Position numbers and translations under genes: made by a program. A DNA stretch of 10,234 bases from Prasinococcaceae sp. CCMP 1430 (taxonomy: Eukaryota > Plantae > Prasinodermophyta). This document shows positions 1,065 to 10,232 of the stretch, piece after piece. The stretch lies in assembly GCA_013416795.1 (NCBI GenBank), contig RQSC01000020.1, forward strand, positions 80,494 to 90,727, written 5' to 3'. Under the pieces are notes generated by a model. The model did no database searches and was not told where the DNA came from. It worked only from the letters and a program-made list of their open reading frames with translations. Numbering within the stretch: position 1 is the stretch's first letter; every line of letters begins with the position of its first letter.

Positions 1065-2704
1065 GCCCATCACCACCCATCCACAGATCTCCCCCTTTCG
1101 CTCGCTCGTCCGCGGATCCCACACGTTTTCACCCGCCGCGTCAGCGCCGCCTCGGATCGTGGCTCGGCCTGCCTGGGCCGCACACAACGTTTGCAGCGCG
1201 CGCGCGTGGCGCACGCCGACGGATCCCACGCGGGGCAGAAGCGTTGACCCCCGCCCGGCCCCACGACGCCGCCTGCCCCTCGGCGGATTCCATGACGGCG
1301 CGTTTGACCTCTGCAGGCCCGAGGTCGGGCGGGTGGACCGCACGGCGAGAATTCGGGGCCGGGCGGCGCCAGCCGCCGGGAGGCTTCGGCAATTGCCTCC
1401 GTGGATCGGACCGAAGGGGCCATCTGTCCAACTGGGGCGCGACGGGCGGACGCGTCCACGTGTGCGATGGGACCAAGGGCGATCCTCGGAGGGAGTTGCT
1501 CACGAACCCCAATCCGGGCGCGAATCTGCCACGTGTGCGACAGCCGGACCGAAAGTTCCACTCATCGGACGCGGCCACGCGGCGGCCGTTACGGCCCGGG
1601 GGCAGGCGGTTAGCACGCGGCTGCGAGGCCCGCGGGGGCACGCGGCGCACCTCAGAACGCCACGAAGGCAGGCCCGCGTGTCGCCGCGCCACAGAAAACT
1701 CGCCCCTTGACAGTTATCTGAGCCGCGGAGGGGCATCAACATACCATGATCAACGACACTCAACGTGTTGAATGTGAACGACACTGAATGTGACCTCGCA
1801 TATGCCACATGGCGCGTGCGCGTGGTGCTCGTGCACACCGCGCGGCGGTAGAGCATGGTCGCCCGTGGGTATGTACATCATGCTTCTGACCTCGCGCAAG
1901 TCCTGGCCTCTGCCGGGCTCCGCGTGAAGGCTCCGCCCACGACGTCGCGCTCACGATCAAAAGCCTTCGCGAACCCACACGCGTCCACCTGTCCGCCCCG
2001 GGGCATGCACGCGTTCGACGGCCCGCGGCATTTCTTTTCGTGCCGCCGTCACCTTTGGCAGTGGGCCTCCGGTCAGCCCGCCAGCCCTGCGCGGCGTGGA
2101 CCCGCTGGCCGCACGAACGCGTAGGTTTGGTGTGGTAGGTGCCCGCAGGGCGCTGGACCAACGCGCTCGCCCCAATCACCTGATGAGTGTGCCGCGCCCT
2201 GCGGCTGCCGGCGACGCGCTTCAACCTGCTGACTGCGTGAGCTGCGCGTGCCATGGGGCACCCTCCGAGTGTCAAGAGCCCGATTTTTTTGTTCGCGGGC
2301 TCTGGCGGCGCGCGCTCACGTCGCGCAGACGAGATATTGCCCGGCGCGCGCGCGCCGCGAATTCGGCATCTCCGCGGCGCGTGGGCCAGGGGTCAGCATC
2401 GCCGGCCGTCGGAGCGCCGACTTCGAGACGCGCCACGTGCTGGGCGCGTACAGCCTGTACCGCGCACGCCGTGGGGTCGTCGTTGTGCTCACGCGATGGC
2501 GCGCCACCAACCCGAGATGTGTCATGCCGCCCATGGAAAGCCATCCGTCCATGAGGACGCGCGGACTCGGCCGGGCGCCGACTGAGGCTGGTGCTGGTAC
2601 AGAGATGCGTGTCGTTTTACGTTGCATTGGGTTTGATTGTACAGCAGAGGCGGCGCGCGGCCCCCGCGAGCGCCGCAGAGACGCTCGCTCGCACAGCCGG
2701 GGGC

Positions 2705-3565
2705 TCATGCGCAGTCCGCCTTGAGCTTGTCCGCCTTGAGCTTGTCCGCCTTGATGAGCTTGCGCGCGAGGTGGTAGCCGCTGCTGAGGAACAGCGCGAC
2801 GTTGACGGCCGCGAGGTTGTAGTTGAGCGGCTTGACGAGCAGCGAGTAGCGCGTGAAGAGCAGGCCGGTCATGGTCAGCGCCGAGTACTGCGCGAGGCTG
2901 ATCTTGTCGGTCGGTCGGTCCAACTCGAGCATGCTCGCGCCCGAGATGAACCACTTGCTCATGGGCGCCCAGAAGTGCACCGTGAACGGCCCAGCGTCCG
3001 CGACAGCGAAAGCGCTCACGGCGCCGAGCCCCGCGCCGGCGACGGCGGACCGCAGCGCCGGCCCGGCGGCGATGAGCGCACCGCCGGCGACCGCCGCGGC
3101 GGCTGCCTTCCGTGCCATCGCCACCACCTCGTCCGATCGCCCCGCGTCCCACTTGGCCTGCACCGCGCGCCTCCCCTGGTTGAGCTGCGCGACCACGTTG
3201 GTCGCGTGGCATGCGCCCAGCGCGAAGTTTTGCGGCCGCACGACCCACGCCCAGCGCGCGAACAGCGACGAGTACACGGTCAGCACGCCGGTCATGGGGA
3301 GAGAGATCAGCTCGGGCCCCGAGTTGGACGCGTCGTAGATCGCCGACCCGGTCATGCCCCAGGCAGCGACGCCCGCGACTGCCCCCCACACCTCCGCCGA
3401 GGTCCACCAGCTCTCGTCCTTCGCGCCCGCGTCAACGGCGGCGGCGGCGGAGCCGCGGGACCGCGCCTGTGCCGCCGCGTGCCGCACGAGCGACGGCGCC
3501 GCGACGGAGGAGGTCGCGGCCGCTCGCGTCGTCGCCGTCGCTGCCACGCCGCGCTGCGTCCTCAT
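2705..3565 (-). CDS. MPC: Mitochondrial pyruvate carrier, tandem MPC1-like + MPC2-like fusion protein (286 aa)
   Basis: ATG at 3565, TGA at 2705-2707. aa 53-133 match the MPC1 pattern (WG...GPELIS..MT..L..YS.LF.R.A..V.PQN..L.ACHATN..AQL.QG.R). aa 191-270 match the MPC2 pattern (AGP.TVHFWAP..KW...RP.DK.S..Q...L..TG....RYS....P.N..L.AVN). GC3-rich codons and no sign of introns. Confidence 0.93.
   Translation of the reverse strand: MRTQRGVAATATTRAAATSSVAAPSLVRHAAAQARSRGSAAAAVDAGAKDESWWTSAEVWGAVAGVAAWGMTGSAIYDASNSGPELISLPMTGVLTVYSSLFARWAWVVRPQNFALGACHATNVVAQLNQGRRAVQAKWDAGRSDEVVAMARKAAAAAVAGGALIAAGPALRSAVAGAGLGAVSAFAVADAGPFTVHFWAPMSKWFISGASMLELDRPTDKISLAQYSALTMTGLLFTRYSLLVKPLNYNLAAVNVALFLSSGYHLARKLIKADKLKADKLKADCA
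2714..2753 (-). repeat. 15-bp coding tandem repeat (about 2.7 copies) encoding KADKL-KADKL-KAD at the MPC C-terminus
   Basis: gtccgccttgagctt at 2714-2728 and 2729-2743, partial copy gtccgccttg at 2744-2753. Confidence 0.95.
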
Positions 3566-4134
3566 CGCCAGAGTTCGTCGAGCTCACGTAACGCGACCTC
3601 GTGCTCGCGCTCGCCCCACACGCCCCGCGCCGCACCACCCACGCCGCATGCCCCGTGTGCCACCACACACACCCCTGCCGCCCCCCACGCTCGAGCAGCG
3701 CTGCGGGCGTGGGGCAGAGCAGCGCGCTGCAGCAGCAGCCGCAGCAGCAGAGCCCCGCGCACCGAACGCGAACGGATAAAGAGACAACCCTGATGATATC
3801 ATAACCCCAAACCCCCAACCCCAACCCACGGTCGCATACCCCCCTCCCACCCCCGGATCCGCGGCTGGCACGCCGGGCGGAGGGGTCCCGTCCGCGCGCG
3901 GCGCGCCCGGCGGCGTTTTGTGTGGGGCTCGGATAGGGGGTTGAAGCGCGCAGGGGCGCGTCGCGGGGTCGTCGATCGGCGTCGCGGTTTGCGCGTGGAA
4001 TTCGAACGCGAATGCGAGTTTCGCGCGCGCGCGGGGCCGAGGTGGGGGTCCCCAGAGAGAGAGGGTGCGGGGTGGGTTGGTGGGGTTGGACGCCACACCG
4101 ACGCGCGGCGGCGGCGGTGGAGCACCTGGGTGCG
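3566..4134. promoter_or_regulatory. Divergent (bidirectional) promoter and 5'UTR region shared by the MPC and karyopherin genes
   Basis: About 570 bp between head-to-head start codons (3565 minus, 4135 plus). C-rich on the left and G-rich on the right. Transcription start sites are not determinable. Confidence 0.65.
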
Positions 4135-7100
4135 ATGGCGGTGGAGCACCTGGTTGCGCGGCCCCCGATTTTGAGCGCGGTGCCGCTCGCGCCCGCCGAG
4201 CTCGCGGCGGCGCTCGACGCGTCGCAGCGCGCCGGCGACGTCAAGGCGTAGGCGTGCCCCGCGCACGAGAAGCCCGCGGTGCGCGCGGCGCTGCTGCGCG
4301 CGCTCTGCTGCGCGCCCGACGAGAGGGTGCTGCGCCTGCTCGCCGACGCCTTCCGCGAGCTCGCGCAGGCGGACTTCGCGCGCCACACGAAGGCCGCGGC
4401 GGCCGCCACGCACGCCCCCGAGTGGAGCTCGCTCGTCGCCGACCTGCAGCAGGCGCTCGCGTCGTCCAACCTGATGCCGGGCGCCGACGGCGCGCCGCAG
4501 AGCGCGTCGCCGGTGCGCACCTACAATGTGCTCGTCGCGGTGAATACGCTGCTCAAGCCGTACCAGTACTTCCTCGATGCGACCAAGGTGCGCGAGGCGG
4601 CGCCCCAGTCGATGGAGGCCGTCGTTGCGGCGCTCTTCGCGCCGCTGCTCGACATCTTCAAGTCGGTCGCCGCGCAGTACACGGGCGGCGCGGCGGCCGC
4701 GGGCCCCACGCTGCACGTGCTGCTCAAGGCGCTGCACCACAGCGTCCGGGCGTACATGCCGAACGCGCTCAGGCCGCGCGTTGCCGAGTGGGCCGACGTG
4801 GCCAGCGGCGTGCTCGCCTCGGTGCCGGCGGCGATAGGCGCGGGCGTCGAGGACTGCCGGACGCACAAGCGCGCCGTGCAGATCTGCCTCGCGCTGGTCA
4901 CGCGCCACCAGAACGTGCTGGACGCGGCGCGCATGCAGGCGATGGCCGAGGCCGGCTTCGAAGCCGCCAAGACCGTCGTGGGCGCCGCCGCCGCCGAGGA
5001 GCTCCCCGGGCGGTGGGAGATCACCGGCTCCTACTGCTTCGACCTCATGTCGCGCCTGCTGGAGACCACGGGCGGCTGGAACCTGCTGAGCTCGCACCTG
5101 GGCAGCATCGTGAGCACCGCGGCCATTCCCGCGCTCGCGATGCGCTTGCAGGACGCAGAGCTGTGGCACGAAGACGGCGAGGAGTTCGTGCGGCGCTGCC
5201 TGCCGTGCGACTCGGACGCGAGCTCGGGCCTCACGGAGGACCACTTCACGCTGCGCCTGGCGGCCCTCAACCTGATGGGCCTGATCGCCAAGGCCAAGGG
5301 CCCCCCGCCCGGGGCCAAGACGCGCTCGATGTCCAAGCGCAAGAAGGGCAAGCGGTCGGCGACGGCGCCCACAGGCGCGTCCATCATCACGCCGCTGCTC
5401 GAGGGCGTCGACCTCGCCACCGCGGCGCCCTTCGAGGCCACCTCCCCCACGCCGGGCGCGTCGCAGCAGTGCGCCGCGCTGCTCGCGTGGGGCTCCCTCA
5501 AGGAGTACCTCAGCGACCTGGCAAACCTCAGTGACGAGGGGCAGGCGGAGTCGGAGAAGCTGGCGCTCAACATCCTCGTCAAGCGCGCGGCGCCGGCGAT
5601 GGCCCTCGCGGATCCCTTCGTGGCGGCCCACGGCGCGTGGCTGGCGGGCGAGATGGCCGGCCTGCTGCCCGAGGGCAAGTCGGACCGCGCGTACGAGGGG
5701 CTCACCGTGCTGCTGGCGAGCAAGGACATCACGGTGGGCGAGGGTGACCTCGAAGAGGAGATGTCGCTCTCGCCACTGCGCTCGGCGGCGGCCAACAGCC
5801 TGTCGGCACTGCTGGAGGGAGGCACGGCGCCACCGCAGTGGGCGGGCCTCGTGGACGCCATGATGGGGCTGGCGCGCTCGGAGGAGGAGGAGGAGTCGTG
5901 CCGCGCTCTGGCGCTGGTCGAGGCCGCCGCCACGTCCTGCGCATCGGACGTGGTCGCCTACGCCGGCCCGCTTGCGGCCGCGCTCGGTGCCGTCACCAAG
6001 GGATGGCTCGCGCGCTACGCCGAGGACAACCCGAGTGCCGTCACCGAGCCGTGGCCGACTCCCGTCGAGAGCGGCTTCTCAGCGCTGGCTGCGCTGGCGG
6101 ACGCGTACGACGAGGCCGTGGAAGAGGTCGAGGAAGAAACGGATGCGCGTGCTGCGATCGAGGCGGGCCGCGCGACGCTGTCTGCGCCCCTCGCCGAGCT
6201 GCTGCAGGCCTTCTGGCTGAACCCCTGGTTCCAGGGTCCCGAGGGCATCAAGCCGCCGCCCTCGTGCGTGCGCGAGGGCTGCGTTCTAGTCGGGTGCATC
6301 CTCAAGAGCGCGCGCAGGGCCGGCGGCGCGGGCGCGGCGGCGGTGGCGCAATGGCGCGTGGAAGAGCTCGTGGCCGTGCTTGCGGCCTCACTCGCCGACT
6401 TCGAGCCGTGGGCTGAGGAGTGCGTGCAGGACGTGCTCGTGGCGCTCGATCAGATCCTCGAGATGCAGGAGGAGGCGCCCATGGGCTCCTTCGCCCGCGG
6501 AGCTGCACCTCACCTATGCGCGCTGCTGTCGGAGGGCGTTAAGCACGCGCCGGCGGAGGGCGCGGTTCAGCTCGCGCGCCGCGCCCACCAACTCATCTCG
6601 CGCCTGGTGGTCGCGGTCGGGCCACAAGGCACCGAGGCGGTCGTGTGCAGCCTCGCGGCCGCCGCCGGCGAGCGGCTGGACGCAATCGGGGCGAGCAACT
6701 TCGCGCGCCCGCTTGCGGTGCTGCTCGCTGCTTGCATCGCGCGTTCACCCGTGGCGGCTGCCTTCGCCGCGGCCGCGGCGGGCTGTCCGATGGACACCTT
6801 CGCTTTCGTCGTGTCGGACAGCATCGAGGAGGGGCACGTCGATGAGACGGACGAGGCGAGGATACTCGCGCTGGGCTGCGCGCGCGTCGCCACGCAGAGC
6901 GCAAGCAGCGCGGGTGCGAGCCAGTCTCTGGGCGCGCTCGTGACCGCCGCAGTTGCTGCCACTGCCCTCGCTGGGGAGCTCGCGCACGCCGAGGCCACGG
7001 GTGCTGAAGAGGAGGAAGAGATGGACGACGAGGACGAGGATGACGACGACTATGACGACGACGAGGAGGAGGAGGAGGAGGAGGAGACAGAGGAAGAGTT

Positions 7101-7356
7101 CCTCGAGCGATACGCGCAGGCCGCGAAGGACCTCGCCGAGGAGGCCGAGGGCGCGCACGACACGTGGGACGGCGAGGAAGAGGAGGGCTGCGCCGACCAG
7201 GGTGAATTGGCGCAGGCTGACGTCAGCGCTGAAGTCGGCCAGGGGGTCCTCGCCGCCATCAGGGCGGGCGTGCCGGCAAACAAAGCGCTCAAGGAGAAGG
7301 TCGCCGAAGCCGGCCAACGCTTCCCATCGTTGGCAGCGCTCTCGTCGCAGCTGTGA
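4135..7356 (+). CDS. Importin-beta family karyopherin (HEAT/ARM repeats, importin-7/8-related, PLANTKAP-like). In-frame TAG at 4249-4251, so the true 5' structure is uncertain
   Basis: Uninterrupted frame 4252-7356 ending TGA (the track's 4279 start is a GTG). Motifs match my recollection of Arabidopsis At3g17340/PLANTKAP: W..LV.DL..A...S.L, KP(Y/F)QYFL, LV.RH, GW.LLS.H, W.ED..EF.R..LP, AA.NL...A..KGPP...KRKKG, PLR.AAA..L..LLE, PP.W, and an acidic tail ending EETEEEFLERYA. The same frame continues upstream of the TAG to ATG 4135 with coding-like codons. Confidence 0.88.
7006..7098 (+). repeat. Coding acidic low-complexity tract (EEEEEMDDEDEDDDDYDDDEEEEEEEETEEE), including (GAG)8 at 7063-7086
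   Basis: Read directly. Acidic C-terminal segments are typical of importin-7/8-type karyopherins. Confidence 0.9.
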
Positions 7357-7748: not shown

Positions 7749-10232
7749 TCACATCTCGCCCTCGCTCTCGGATCCCTCGCTCGCGGCTATGTCCTCCGCC
7801 GCGAGAAGCGAGGCGTACGTGCGCCCGTGCACGGCGAGCTGCACGCGCGCGATGCTCTCGAGCTGGGCCGCAGCAACGCCCACCTCCTCTGCCAGGACCG
7901 CACCCTCGGCCGTCGACGCACCAACAGACGCCAGGGCACAGCAGGCCGCCTCCATGCCGGCCACAGGGCCCAGCGCAAGCACGGCGCGCGCGGCGGCTCG
8001 CACCGCATCGACGCACCGCTTGGCGATGGCGCCGCCGGCGAGGTGATGCGACAGGAGCCGCGCTATCATGCCGGTGGATGTCCCGGACTCGTTCTCGTCC
8101 ACCGCGAGCGCAAGCTCACGGGCGACATCCTCGAGCACCACGCCGCTGTCGGCACCGGCGGCGGGCCCACGCAGCAACGCCATCGCGCGAGAGGCTGCAG
8201 CTCCCATTGCCTCCGCCGGCAGCGCGGGCTTGCGCAAAGCGGCGCGCGCCTGCTTCGCAGCGAGCAGAGCTGCCGCAAGGCACACGCACCGCCGCAACGC
8301 CTCCGCCGACTGGAGCATGCGCAGCGCCTCGTACTCGAGTGTCTCTGGAATGAGCGCGTGCTGCTCCTCGCAGAGCTCCACGGGTTTGTCGAGAGCGCTG
8401 ACGAGCTCCTCCGCCGCGTCGCTTCCACTGCCATCCTTCCCCTCTCGCGGGCGGAGCGCGGTGAGCATGCCCATGGCCATCTCCACGAGCCCGATGCGTA
8501 GCGGGCCCGCGGCGCACTCCCACCAGGTGTCATGGGCCGCCTCGGCGGGGCGCGAGTGCGCCGCGCCCGCGCTGCGCGCGCTCAGCCGCCGCAGCTGGCC
8601 GTAGGACATCGCCCGCCCGCTCTGAATGTGCTGTGGCACCGCAGCGCGCGCAGCTGCGGCGGCCTGCAGGCTGGCGCGCGCCTCGGTGGCGGCTGCGCGA
8701 GAGGAGCGTATCCACGCGAGCGACGTTGGCAGCGCCTGTGCGGGCGACCTGTGCGCGGCGTCCGACGCCGCGGACGAGGCGCGGCGGCGCAAGGAGGCGG
8801 CGCGCGATGCGGGCGAATATGCCATGCGCGAGGACGGAGGCGGCGACTCAGGGTCTGTGCCTTCCGCGTCGTCGGCGTCGTCGGCTTCCTGCGCAAGGCT
8901 GTGCTCTTCGGCGAAGTGCGAGCGCACGTATGAGGCGCCGGCGCCGGGGCCCAGCGCGGCTGCCAGCGCTCCAAGGCCGGCGTTGGCGGCGTCCACGGCG
9001 ATGGCGCACGCTGCGCGGTGCAGCACCTCGAAGAGCGAGGCAACTGCGTCGGCCGCGTCGGTGCACCCACTCACCTGGCAGAGGGCGGCTTCGATCTCCG
9101 CCTCGCGGACGGGCGCGCCCAGCCCGATGATCGTGGCGCTCGCGCGGTCCGCGTAGGGCGTCAGCAGCGCGACCACGTCGGTAGCTCGCTTGATGCCGTC
9201 AGGGCTGCCGTCGGTGCCGGTGTCATTGATCGTATCGACGGAGTCTGGGAGGAGCTCGGCGGCGGCCTTGAGGCCCGCGGCGCACGCCTCGCCTGCGCGG
9301 CCTGCGTTGCCCACCGCCTCAACGGTGGCCTCGCGCACATCCTCGGCGAGCGCGCGCACGTGCTCCGCGGCGCTCGTCGGCGAGGGAGCGCCGCGAAGCG
9401 CCGCGGCGATGGTGGCACGTGTGGCGCGCCGCGCGGTGGCCAGCACGCGCGCGCCGCGCCCGCCCAGGAGCGCATTGGTGCCGCTCTCCTCGGTGTTTTC
9501 CTCCGACTCGCGCAGGATCACAGGCGACGGCAGGCGGAAGTCCGAGTCGTGCAGCAGCTCGTAGATCATGCGCGCACGCGGCACGTGCCCCAGCCCGGGC
9601 ACGTTGATGCCGCTGTCGCGCCCGCCGCCGTCGGCTCTCCCTGCGGCGGCGCGGGCGCCGCCCTCGGCGCGCTCGCGCGCGACGGTGGCCTCGGCGGCGC
9701 GCGTGGCCTCCCCGACGGCCGCGTCGAAGCGCGCGGCGCCGGCGGCCCCGCCAACGTTGAGCGCCTTGGAGCGCAGCATCGCCACGTCAGCGCGCGCGCC
9801 GTCGGCGAGCGCGCGCAGGTCGGAGGCCTCGTGCATGTCGGCCGTGGAACGCCCGTTGAGCTTGAGCGTCGCGCTGGCCGAGATGGTGCACGCGGCGCGC
9901 GTGAGGTCCGCCTCGAGCGCCGCCGCGTCGGCGCGCTTCCACGCGTCGAACGCGGCGAGGAAGGCTGCCCAGTGCGCCTCAAAGGCCGCCGCCGCGCGCG
10001 CGCCGGGGATGAGGTCGCGCAGCGCTGCCACCAGTCCTGCCGCGGCGGCCGCCAGCGCCTCGCGCGCCTCGGCGTTGGCCTCGCCGCCCATCACCGCCTC
10101 GGGCGCGCCTACGATCATGTACGCCGACAGCAGCACGCGCGTCGGGTGCCACTCGGGCTGCGGGCGCAGCGCCGCTGACAGCCCGCCGCGGCGCGGCGCG
10201 GCCGAGGAGCTCCCGGCTGCGCCGTGCTGCGC
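7749..10232 (-). CDS. T-complex protein 11 (Tcp11/SOK1 family) protein, 5'-partial (runs off the window end)
   Basis: The frame stays open from the window edge (AQHGAAG...PEWHPTRVLLSAYMIVGAPEAV). Hallmarks I recall from plant Tcp11 proteins: (Y/H)P.RV.L.AYMI.G.P.AV, W..(F/Y)L..F..WK..DA..LE.DL.RAAC, YELLHD..F, IPETL, and C-terminal VHG..Y. The track's 10136 start is an internal GTG. Stop TGA at 7749-7751. Confidence 0.87.
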   Translation of the reverse strand, partial: AQHGAAGSSSAAPRRGGLSAALRPQPEWHPTRVLLSAYMIVGAPEAVMGGEANAEAREALAAAAAGLVAALRDLIPGARAAAAFEAHWAAFLAAFDAWKRADAAALEADLTRAACTISASATLKLNGRSTADMHEASDLRALADGARADVAMLRSKALNVGGAAGAARFDAAVGEATRAAEATVARERAEGGARAAAGRADGGGRDSGINVPGLGHVPRARMIYELLHDSDFRLPSPVILRESEENTEESGTNALLGGRGARVLATARRATRATIAAALRGAPSPTSAAEHVRALAEDVREATVEAVGNAGRAGEACAAGLKAAAELLPDSVDTINDTGTDGSPDGIKRATDVVALLTPYADRASATIIGLGAPVREAEIEAALCQVSGCTDAADAVASLFEVLHRAACAIAVDAANAGLGALAAALGPGAGASYVRSHFAEEHSLAQEADDADDAEGTDPESPPPSSRMAYSPASRAASLRRRASSAASDAAHRSPAQALPTSLAWIRSSRAAATEARASLQAAAAARAAVPQHIQSGRAMSYGQLRRLSARSAGAAHSRPAEAAHDTWWECAAGPLRIGLVEMAMGMLTALRPREGKDGSGSDAAEELVSALDKPVELCEEQHALIPETLEYEALRMLQSAEALRRCVCLAAALLAAKQARAALRKPALPAEAMGAAASRAMALLRGPAAGADSGVVLEDVARELALAVDENESGTSTGMIARLLSHHLAGGAIAKRCVDAVRAAARAVLALGPVAGMEAACCALASVGASTAEGAVLAEEVGVAAAQLESIARVQLAVHGRTYASLLAAEDIAASEGSESEGEM

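Follow-up and report, generated by a model that had tools for sequence, protein, structure and literature searches.

A fused mitochondrial pyruvate carrier gene from a marine green alga, with a linker predicted to form a seventh membrane helix

Results

A single open reading frame contains an MPC1-type and an MPC2-type unit

The window analyzed here is the whole stretch of 10,234 nucleotides from contig RQSC01000020.1 of Prasinococcaceae sp. CCMP 1430, with a G+C content of approximately 72%. A complete intronless open reading frame (ORF) of 286 amino acids with an ATG start codon is located on the minus strand at positions 2705..3565, and all features of this gene given below lie on the same strand. 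An in-frame TGA is found 21 nt upstream of the ATG and the GC3 value of the ORF is 93%. The source of the gene is a marine green alga, and the overlapping ORFs in other frames of the window are the usual by-product of the high G+C content. Elsewhere in the window, a 795-aa ORF (7749-10136, minus strand) contains a Tcp11 (T-complex protein 11) domain (PF05794, E 2.9e-12), and a Pfam scan of the 1025-aa ORF at 4279-7356 (plus strand) as one ORF gave zero matches at E<=0.001.

The sequence-only reading of this locus had proposed one ORF with an MPC1-like unit followed by an MPC2-like unit and had predicted two matches to the Pfam family PF03650 (MPC). Both claims were borne out: PF03650 was found in two stretches of the 286-aa ORF with 151.7 bits against a cut-off of 27, and a PDB sequence search aligned aa 52-138 (3152..3412) with residues 20-102 of human MPC1 and aa 190-269 (2759..2998) with residues 35-114 of human MPC2. 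When the halves were searched separately, the N-terminal half scored 60.5 bits to MPC1 and 14.6 bits to MPC2, and the C-terminal half scored 61.9 bits to MPC2 and 24.9 bits to MPC1. These margins of approximately 35-45 bits establish the order MPC1 then MPC2. The nucleotide coordinates proposed earlier for both units and for the core of the linker between them (aa 154-171, nt 3053-3106) were arithmetically right.

Residues equivalent to human MPC1 His84, MPC2 Lys49 and MPC2 Asn100 had been reported as retained, and the PDB-search alignment identifies them as H120, K204 and N255. Their roles in the substrate and proton site were described for human MPC1 H84 (MPC1L H86), MPC2 K49 and MPC2 N100 (PMC12007569, PMC10909473). 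In the same alignment, F66 and N77 of human MPC1 correspond to F102 and N113, and R62 and Y85 of human MPC2 correspond to R217 and Y240. Two human MPC2 residues are replaced, W82 by F237 and G56 by Ser; human MPC2 carrying W82F is still functional (PMC12280002). H120, K204 and N255 are invariant in an alignment of 76 family members, as are the other aligned key positions F102, N113, R217, F237 and Y240.

The linker is covered by RNA-library contigs

The RNA evidence consists of assembled metatranscriptome contigs, which can contain DNA. Marine metatranscriptome contigs map to 2609-3124, 2951-3354 and 3193-3479 with approximately 99% identity and leave no gap in the linker. A probable RNA run that carries the name of the source species contributes contigs at 2772-2937 and 3174-3389. 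The flanking regions 1900-2600 and 3620-4100 were matched by no metatranscriptome contigs except for a 21-nt chance match. Splicing of the linker or two separate transcripts had been named as a possible objection to the fusion. However, contigs from two runs cross the linker without a break, so that it is present and unspliced in the RNA-library contigs. On the basis of these assembled contigs, the fused MPC gene is real and expressed.

The region 2609..2704, which lies under the contig ending at 2609, is a probable 3' UTR. The C-terminal tail of the protein is encoded by a 15-nt tandem repeat that specifies KADKL approximately 2.6 times (2714..2752). In one marine metatranscriptome contig, exactly one KADKL unit (15 nt at 2714) is missing, so that the repeat length differs between strains. 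The tail consensus of the fused MPC family is GRKIKADYI, without a KADKL repeat.

The linker is hydrophobic, conserved and fixed in length

The linker begins with a charged region (aa 134-153), followed by an uncharged core of approximately 18 residues (aa 154-171, 3053..3106), a Gln or Arg at position 172 and a second conserved hydrophobic segment (aa 173-189, 2999..3049). The uncharged stretch AAAAAVAGGALIAAGPAL lies where the hydrophobicity of the protein peaks: a Kyte-Doolittle scan placed the maximum of the entire chain at aa 154-190. The core is rich in Ala and Gly and ends in a nearly invariant G168-P169. The second segment has the consensus SAL..ANLG.VS..AAA, occupies the place of the amphipathic and linker helices of stand-alone MPC2 and is immediately followed by an invariant AGPFT.HFWAP motif at the start of the MPC2 unit.

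The hydrophobicity of the uncharged stretch, noted earlier from the single sequence, was thus confirmed and extends to a family with conserved length and pattern. R133 and G192 are the same number of residues apart in 119 of 121 sequences (the query and its 120 best homologues), and G168, P169, A178, L180, G181, S184 and A187 are each at least 90% conserved in the fused MPC family. Averaged over the family, the Kyte-Doolittle hydropathy reaches 1.04 in the linker core (aa 153-172) and 1.24 in aa 173-189, compared to 0.41-1.20 for the six helices that are homologous to experimentally resolved human transmembrane (TM) helices. The summed Hessa-type insertion energy of the core is positive, but the true TM helices of this protein fare no better. 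Fixed length, conserved pattern and hydropathy together indicate that the linker is strongly constrained and at least as membrane-like as the known TM helices of this protein.

Structural models support a SWEET-like 3+1+3 architecture

An AlphaFold2 run on the 76-sequence family alignment yielded a model with a pLDDT of 79.7 and a pTM of 0.69. Helices were predicted at aa 57-81, 89-109 and 111-140 in the MPC1-type unit, at aa 144-177 and, as a short helix, 182-187 in the linker, and at aa 196-213, 224-243 and 249-285 in the MPC2-type unit, whose first helix has a lower confidence (pLDDT 63-72). The linker helix aa 144-177 (3035..3136) was modelled with a pLDDT of 83-93 and is the proposed seventh, TM4-like membrane helix.

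The sequence-only reading had suggested that such a helix places both halves the same way round, and a model compared with MPC and SWEET structures was to be informative. The models agree with both expectations. With Foldseek, the halves of the model matched chains of human MPC2 and MPC1, and the full-length model matched SWEETs. Each half fits the human MPC1 and MPC2 chains with target-normalized TM-scores of 0.74-0.80 and rmsd values of 2.4-3.5 A (Foldseek, VIA-align). For the whole model, VIA-align superimposed residues 54-285 on AtSWEET13 (207 residues aligned, rmsd 4.0) with a Z score of 14.8, only slightly higher than the stated noise level of approximately 13 for helical bundles, followed by OsSWEET2b (14.2), cystinosin (12) and the KDEL receptor (approximately 10). 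Rows 1-15 of this search are all 7-TM three-helix-bundle proteins, and the half-matches to MPC and SemiSWEET rank lower. An independently made ESM Atlas model of a haptophyte-dominated fused MPC cluster gave a TM-score of 0.63 over 223 residues.

An argument from parity points in the same direction. Human MPC1 and MPC2 share one topology, in which the N-terminus and the C-terminus face opposite sides of the membrane, and the two protomers are parallel (PMC12280002, PMC12007569). Two such units can therefore be parallel within a single chain only if this chain crosses the membrane an odd number of additional times. The AlphaFold2 helix, the SWEET-like alignments and parity support, at the level of models, the view that the linker is a membrane-spanning seventh helix in a 3+1+3 architecture. 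Its position suggests to us that the amphipathic N-terminal helix of MPC2 was converted into the linker helix. Although the fusion itself was noted in the open-access literature searched, none of the papers found there recognizes a membrane helix in the linker. The evidence for a conserved seventh helix with a SWEET-like architecture is what the present analysis adds to the known fusion.

The N-terminal extension resembles a mitochondrial presequence

The N-terminal extension (aa 1-51, 3413..3565) is rich in Ala, Ser, Thr and Arg, has a low pLDDT and resembles an organelle presequence, with no acidic residue ahead of D45. In diatom homologues, the N-terminal extension is Arg-rich, measures 34-98 aa and lacks a signal peptide. 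The best reading of the extension is that of a putative mitochondrial presequence, judging from its composition. Import into complex plastids of diatoms needs a signal peptide. Plastid targeting is unlikely, as the diatom homologues have neither a signal peptide nor an ASAFAP-type motif, but it may still apply to the green alga. In contrast to these presequence-like N-termini, the subunits of yeast MPC lack a cleavable presequence and are imported by way of TIM22 (PMC6945462), which suggests that a change of the import route possibly accompanied the fusion.

The orientation of MPC in the membrane is disputed, as the N-termini were placed in the intermembrane space in one study (PMC12007569) and in the matrix in another (PMC12280002) and in earlier yeast work. 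A positive-inside count over the fused family found more Lys and Arg in the C-terminal-side loops (11.0 versus 3.8), but also much more Asp and Glu (12.5 versus 3.2). A family that combines a presequence-like N-terminus with seven helices would offer a new handle on this dispute.

Fused MPC proteins are found in many marine algae

A word search detected 535 significant proteins of similar length, and the best 120 of these 535 share 53-69% identity with the query. Among these 120 are proteins of diatoms (Cyclotella, Thalassiosira, Detonula, Trieres, Epithemia, Cylindrotheca), Pelagophyceae CCMP2097, and the green algae Pycnococcus provasolii and Pseudoscourfieldia marina; clusters of the Atlas contribute haptophyte members. 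The sequence-only reading had rightly named tandem MPC proteins of other algae and stramenopiles: they are published and have hundreds of full-length relatives. Fused MPC was reported in diatoms, e.g. Cyclotella cryptica g13004.t1 (Traller et al. 2016, PMC5124317), a 'single fused MPC' was described in Aureococcus, Perkinsus and Symbiodinium (2025 preprint, bioRxiv 10.1101/2025.01.06.631440), and fused MPCs had to be split for the trees of Santana-Molina et al. 2025 (PMC11976288). The fusion is therefore already published, and the gene is a fairly divergent addition to a known family of single-chain MPCs. Both states occur within green algae, as MPC1 and MPC2 are separate 13-kDa proteins in Polytomella (PMC9637915) and fused in Pycnococcus.

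The nearest relative is a protein of 257 aa with 69% identity (P0001/P0121), encoded by gene L001:3141-3914 on marine metagenome contigs (L001-L003, TARA Oceans and others). These contigs are gene-dense and, like the window, unusually G+C-rich (71%), and the source of this TARA protein is probably an uncultured relative of the alga studied here. The fused MPC gene of this relative and the Pycnococcus homologue are also single uninterrupted ORFs. The neighbors of the TARA gene encode OB-fold Ssb-like and patatin proteins, and no synteny around the fused MPC gene is shared with the TARA relative or with Pycnococcus, which have different neighbors.

In a quick maximum-likelihood tree, which is unrooted and sparsely labelled, the query groups with the high-GC TARA protein (SH-aLRT 96), next with Pycnococcus (SH-aLRT 92), and lies outside the diatom clade (95). 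This position would fit vertical descent in a green-algal group, as far as can be read from an unrooted, sparsely labelled tree. A full-length fused MPC of 274 aa with 59% identity (P0029) is also listed under a choanoflagellate transcriptome (EukProt EP00040, Diaphanoeca grandis); it represents either algal or stramenopile contamination or a fused MPC outside the photosynthetic lineages.

Discussion

We consider it most probable, with a probability of roughly three in four, that the gene product is a naturally occurring single-chain mitochondrial pyruvate carrier with seven helices and two parallel bundles. The combination of one ORF, MPC1- then MPC2-type units, retained key residues, a fixed hydrophobic linker, RNA contiguity and family membership leads to this reading. 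From this we infer that the fused protein is located in mitochondria, transports pyruvate and is self-sufficient. The chain would start with the N-terminal targeting extension and the MPC1-type three-helix bundle, followed by the seventh helix (aa ~144-177), a short conserved surface segment and the MPC2-type three-helix bundle. The seventh helix would return the chain across the inner membrane and thereby make the bundles parallel, as in the human MPC1/MPC2 heterodimer. H120 and K204 would form one central site for pyruvate and protons that operates by alternating access. The resulting 3+1+3 arrangement would be that of SWEETs, PQ-loop transporters and KDEL receptors, but would have arisen inside the MPC family.

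One challenge to a single-chain carrier is that two neighboring genes were joined, or an intron or frameshift in the linker was missed, by the assembly or gene model. One contig does contain a weak joint from 2992 to 3151 that skips 158 nt. However, its short side measures 21 nt, it has 6 mismatches in 57 nt, its border is non-canonical and its length is not a multiple of three; the best explanation for such a joint is that the contig is chimeric or foreign. Unbroken contigs come from two runs, and the same linker is free of indels in over 100 homologues, among them MMETSP transcriptome ORFs that are marked complete. On these grounds, an assembly or splicing artefact is effectively refuted. 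An improbable but more serious alternative accepts the fusion and lets the linker cross the membrane other than once. The segments 154-171 and 173-189 could then form a hairpin, a surface element or a re-entrant element, and the units of one chain, unable to pair in parallel, would pair antiparallel or between chains in domain-swapped dimers. The separation of two hydrophobic segments by the conserved G168-P169 and Q/R172 could be read in this way, as could the short, Ala/Gly-rich core with its positive insertion energy, in which the true TM helices do no better. This arrangement is difficult to reconcile with the single continuous and confident AlphaFold2 helix in a SWEET-like bundle, with which the independent Atlas model of a haptophyte relative concurs. 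Moreover, known MPC dimers are parallel, and with an even number of crossings the one arrangement known to function would be lost.

Slightly less probable still is a seven-helix fused carrier with another job, namely export of pyruvate from mitochondria in which the lower half of glycolysis resides, transport of another small monocarboxylate, or a site in the plastid envelope. Pyruvate export was raised for diatoms, whose mitochondria can make pyruvate (Traller et al. 2016, PMC5124317), and the N-terminal extension of the green alga is indistinguishable by eye from a chloroplast transit peptide. Against these possibilities stand the invariance in the family of the residues that bind pyruvate and protons in human MPC and the Arg-rich, presequence-like N-termini of the diatom homologues without a signal peptide. 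As an alternating-access carrier is reversible, export would in any case require only a change of direction, by the same mechanism.

Beyond the single-chain carrier itself, a tentative scenario that we regard as possible but doubtful is that all fused MPCs form one ancient seven-helix lineage. The amphipathic helix of MPC2 may have become an inversion helix, repeating independently the step from SemiSWEET to SWEET. The lineage may then have spread by endosymbiotic or lateral transfer across prasinophyte-grade green algae, ochrophytes, haptophytes, dinoflagellates and perkinsids, and the presequence-like N-terminus may reflect a switch of import route. [quoted passage not shown]

A natural chain in which MPC1 and MPC2 are covalently joined provides independent confirmation of the 1:1 parallel pair as the working unit. 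With its fixed stoichiometry, the fused protein is a larger and possibly more stable target for biochemistry and structure determination than the fragile 26-kDa heterodimer. The seventh helix, if true, would be the third independent transition from 3+3 to 3+1+3 in the superfamily, beside those of SWEET and of PQ-loop/cystinosin proteins. For algal physiology, the gene marks the entry, or possibly the exit, of pyruvate at mitochondria of lineages which dominate marine primary production.

Comparison with known systems

The closest known systems are the fused MPCs of other algae, such as Cyclotella cryptica g13004.t1, the proteins of Aureococcus, Perkinsus and Symbiodinium, and Pycnococcus provasolii GHP06069.1. 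They share with the query the order of the units, the length of the linker and the linker motif K-A...GP...ANLG..S..AAADAGPFTVHFWAP. The known members have a size of 257-330 aa, and the identities given above for the best 120 of 535 proteins extend over approximately 80-95% of the protein. As even the nearest relative is only 69% identical, the query represents a distinct lineage, and the C-terminal KADKL repeat is its own.

Human and yeast MPC1/MPC2 (SLC54; PDB 8YW6, 9GIV, 9MNW, 9O9S) contain the same two types of unit. The query keeps the equivalents of human H84, K49, N100, F66 and Y85, and its halves are predicted to be three-helix bundles as well. It differs in being one polypeptide instead of two, in the Phe at the position of W82 and in the Ser at the position of G56. 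Compared to yeast MPC, which has no cleavable presequence, the fused family carries presequence-like extensions of 34-98 aa.

SWEETs (AtSWEET13, 5XPD; OsSWEET2b, 5CTG) consist of two parallel three-helix bundles and an inversion helix, as is predicted for the query, whose model matches them over the whole chain (199-207 residues) with Z scores of 14.8-14.1, slightly above the noise level of helical bundles. Cystinosin and other PQ-loop proteins and the KDEL receptor likewise have the 3+1+3 arrangement of the query model. The query is only 8-14% identical to SWEETs, cystinosin and the KDEL receptor, and substrate and membrane differ. No match to the SWEET profile PF03083 (MtN3_slv) was obtained in the query, as Pfam at E<=1 returns PF03650 alone. 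The query thus appears, as modelled, to be SWEET-like in architecture without belonging to the SWEET family, and its seventh helix would have arisen independently within MPC.
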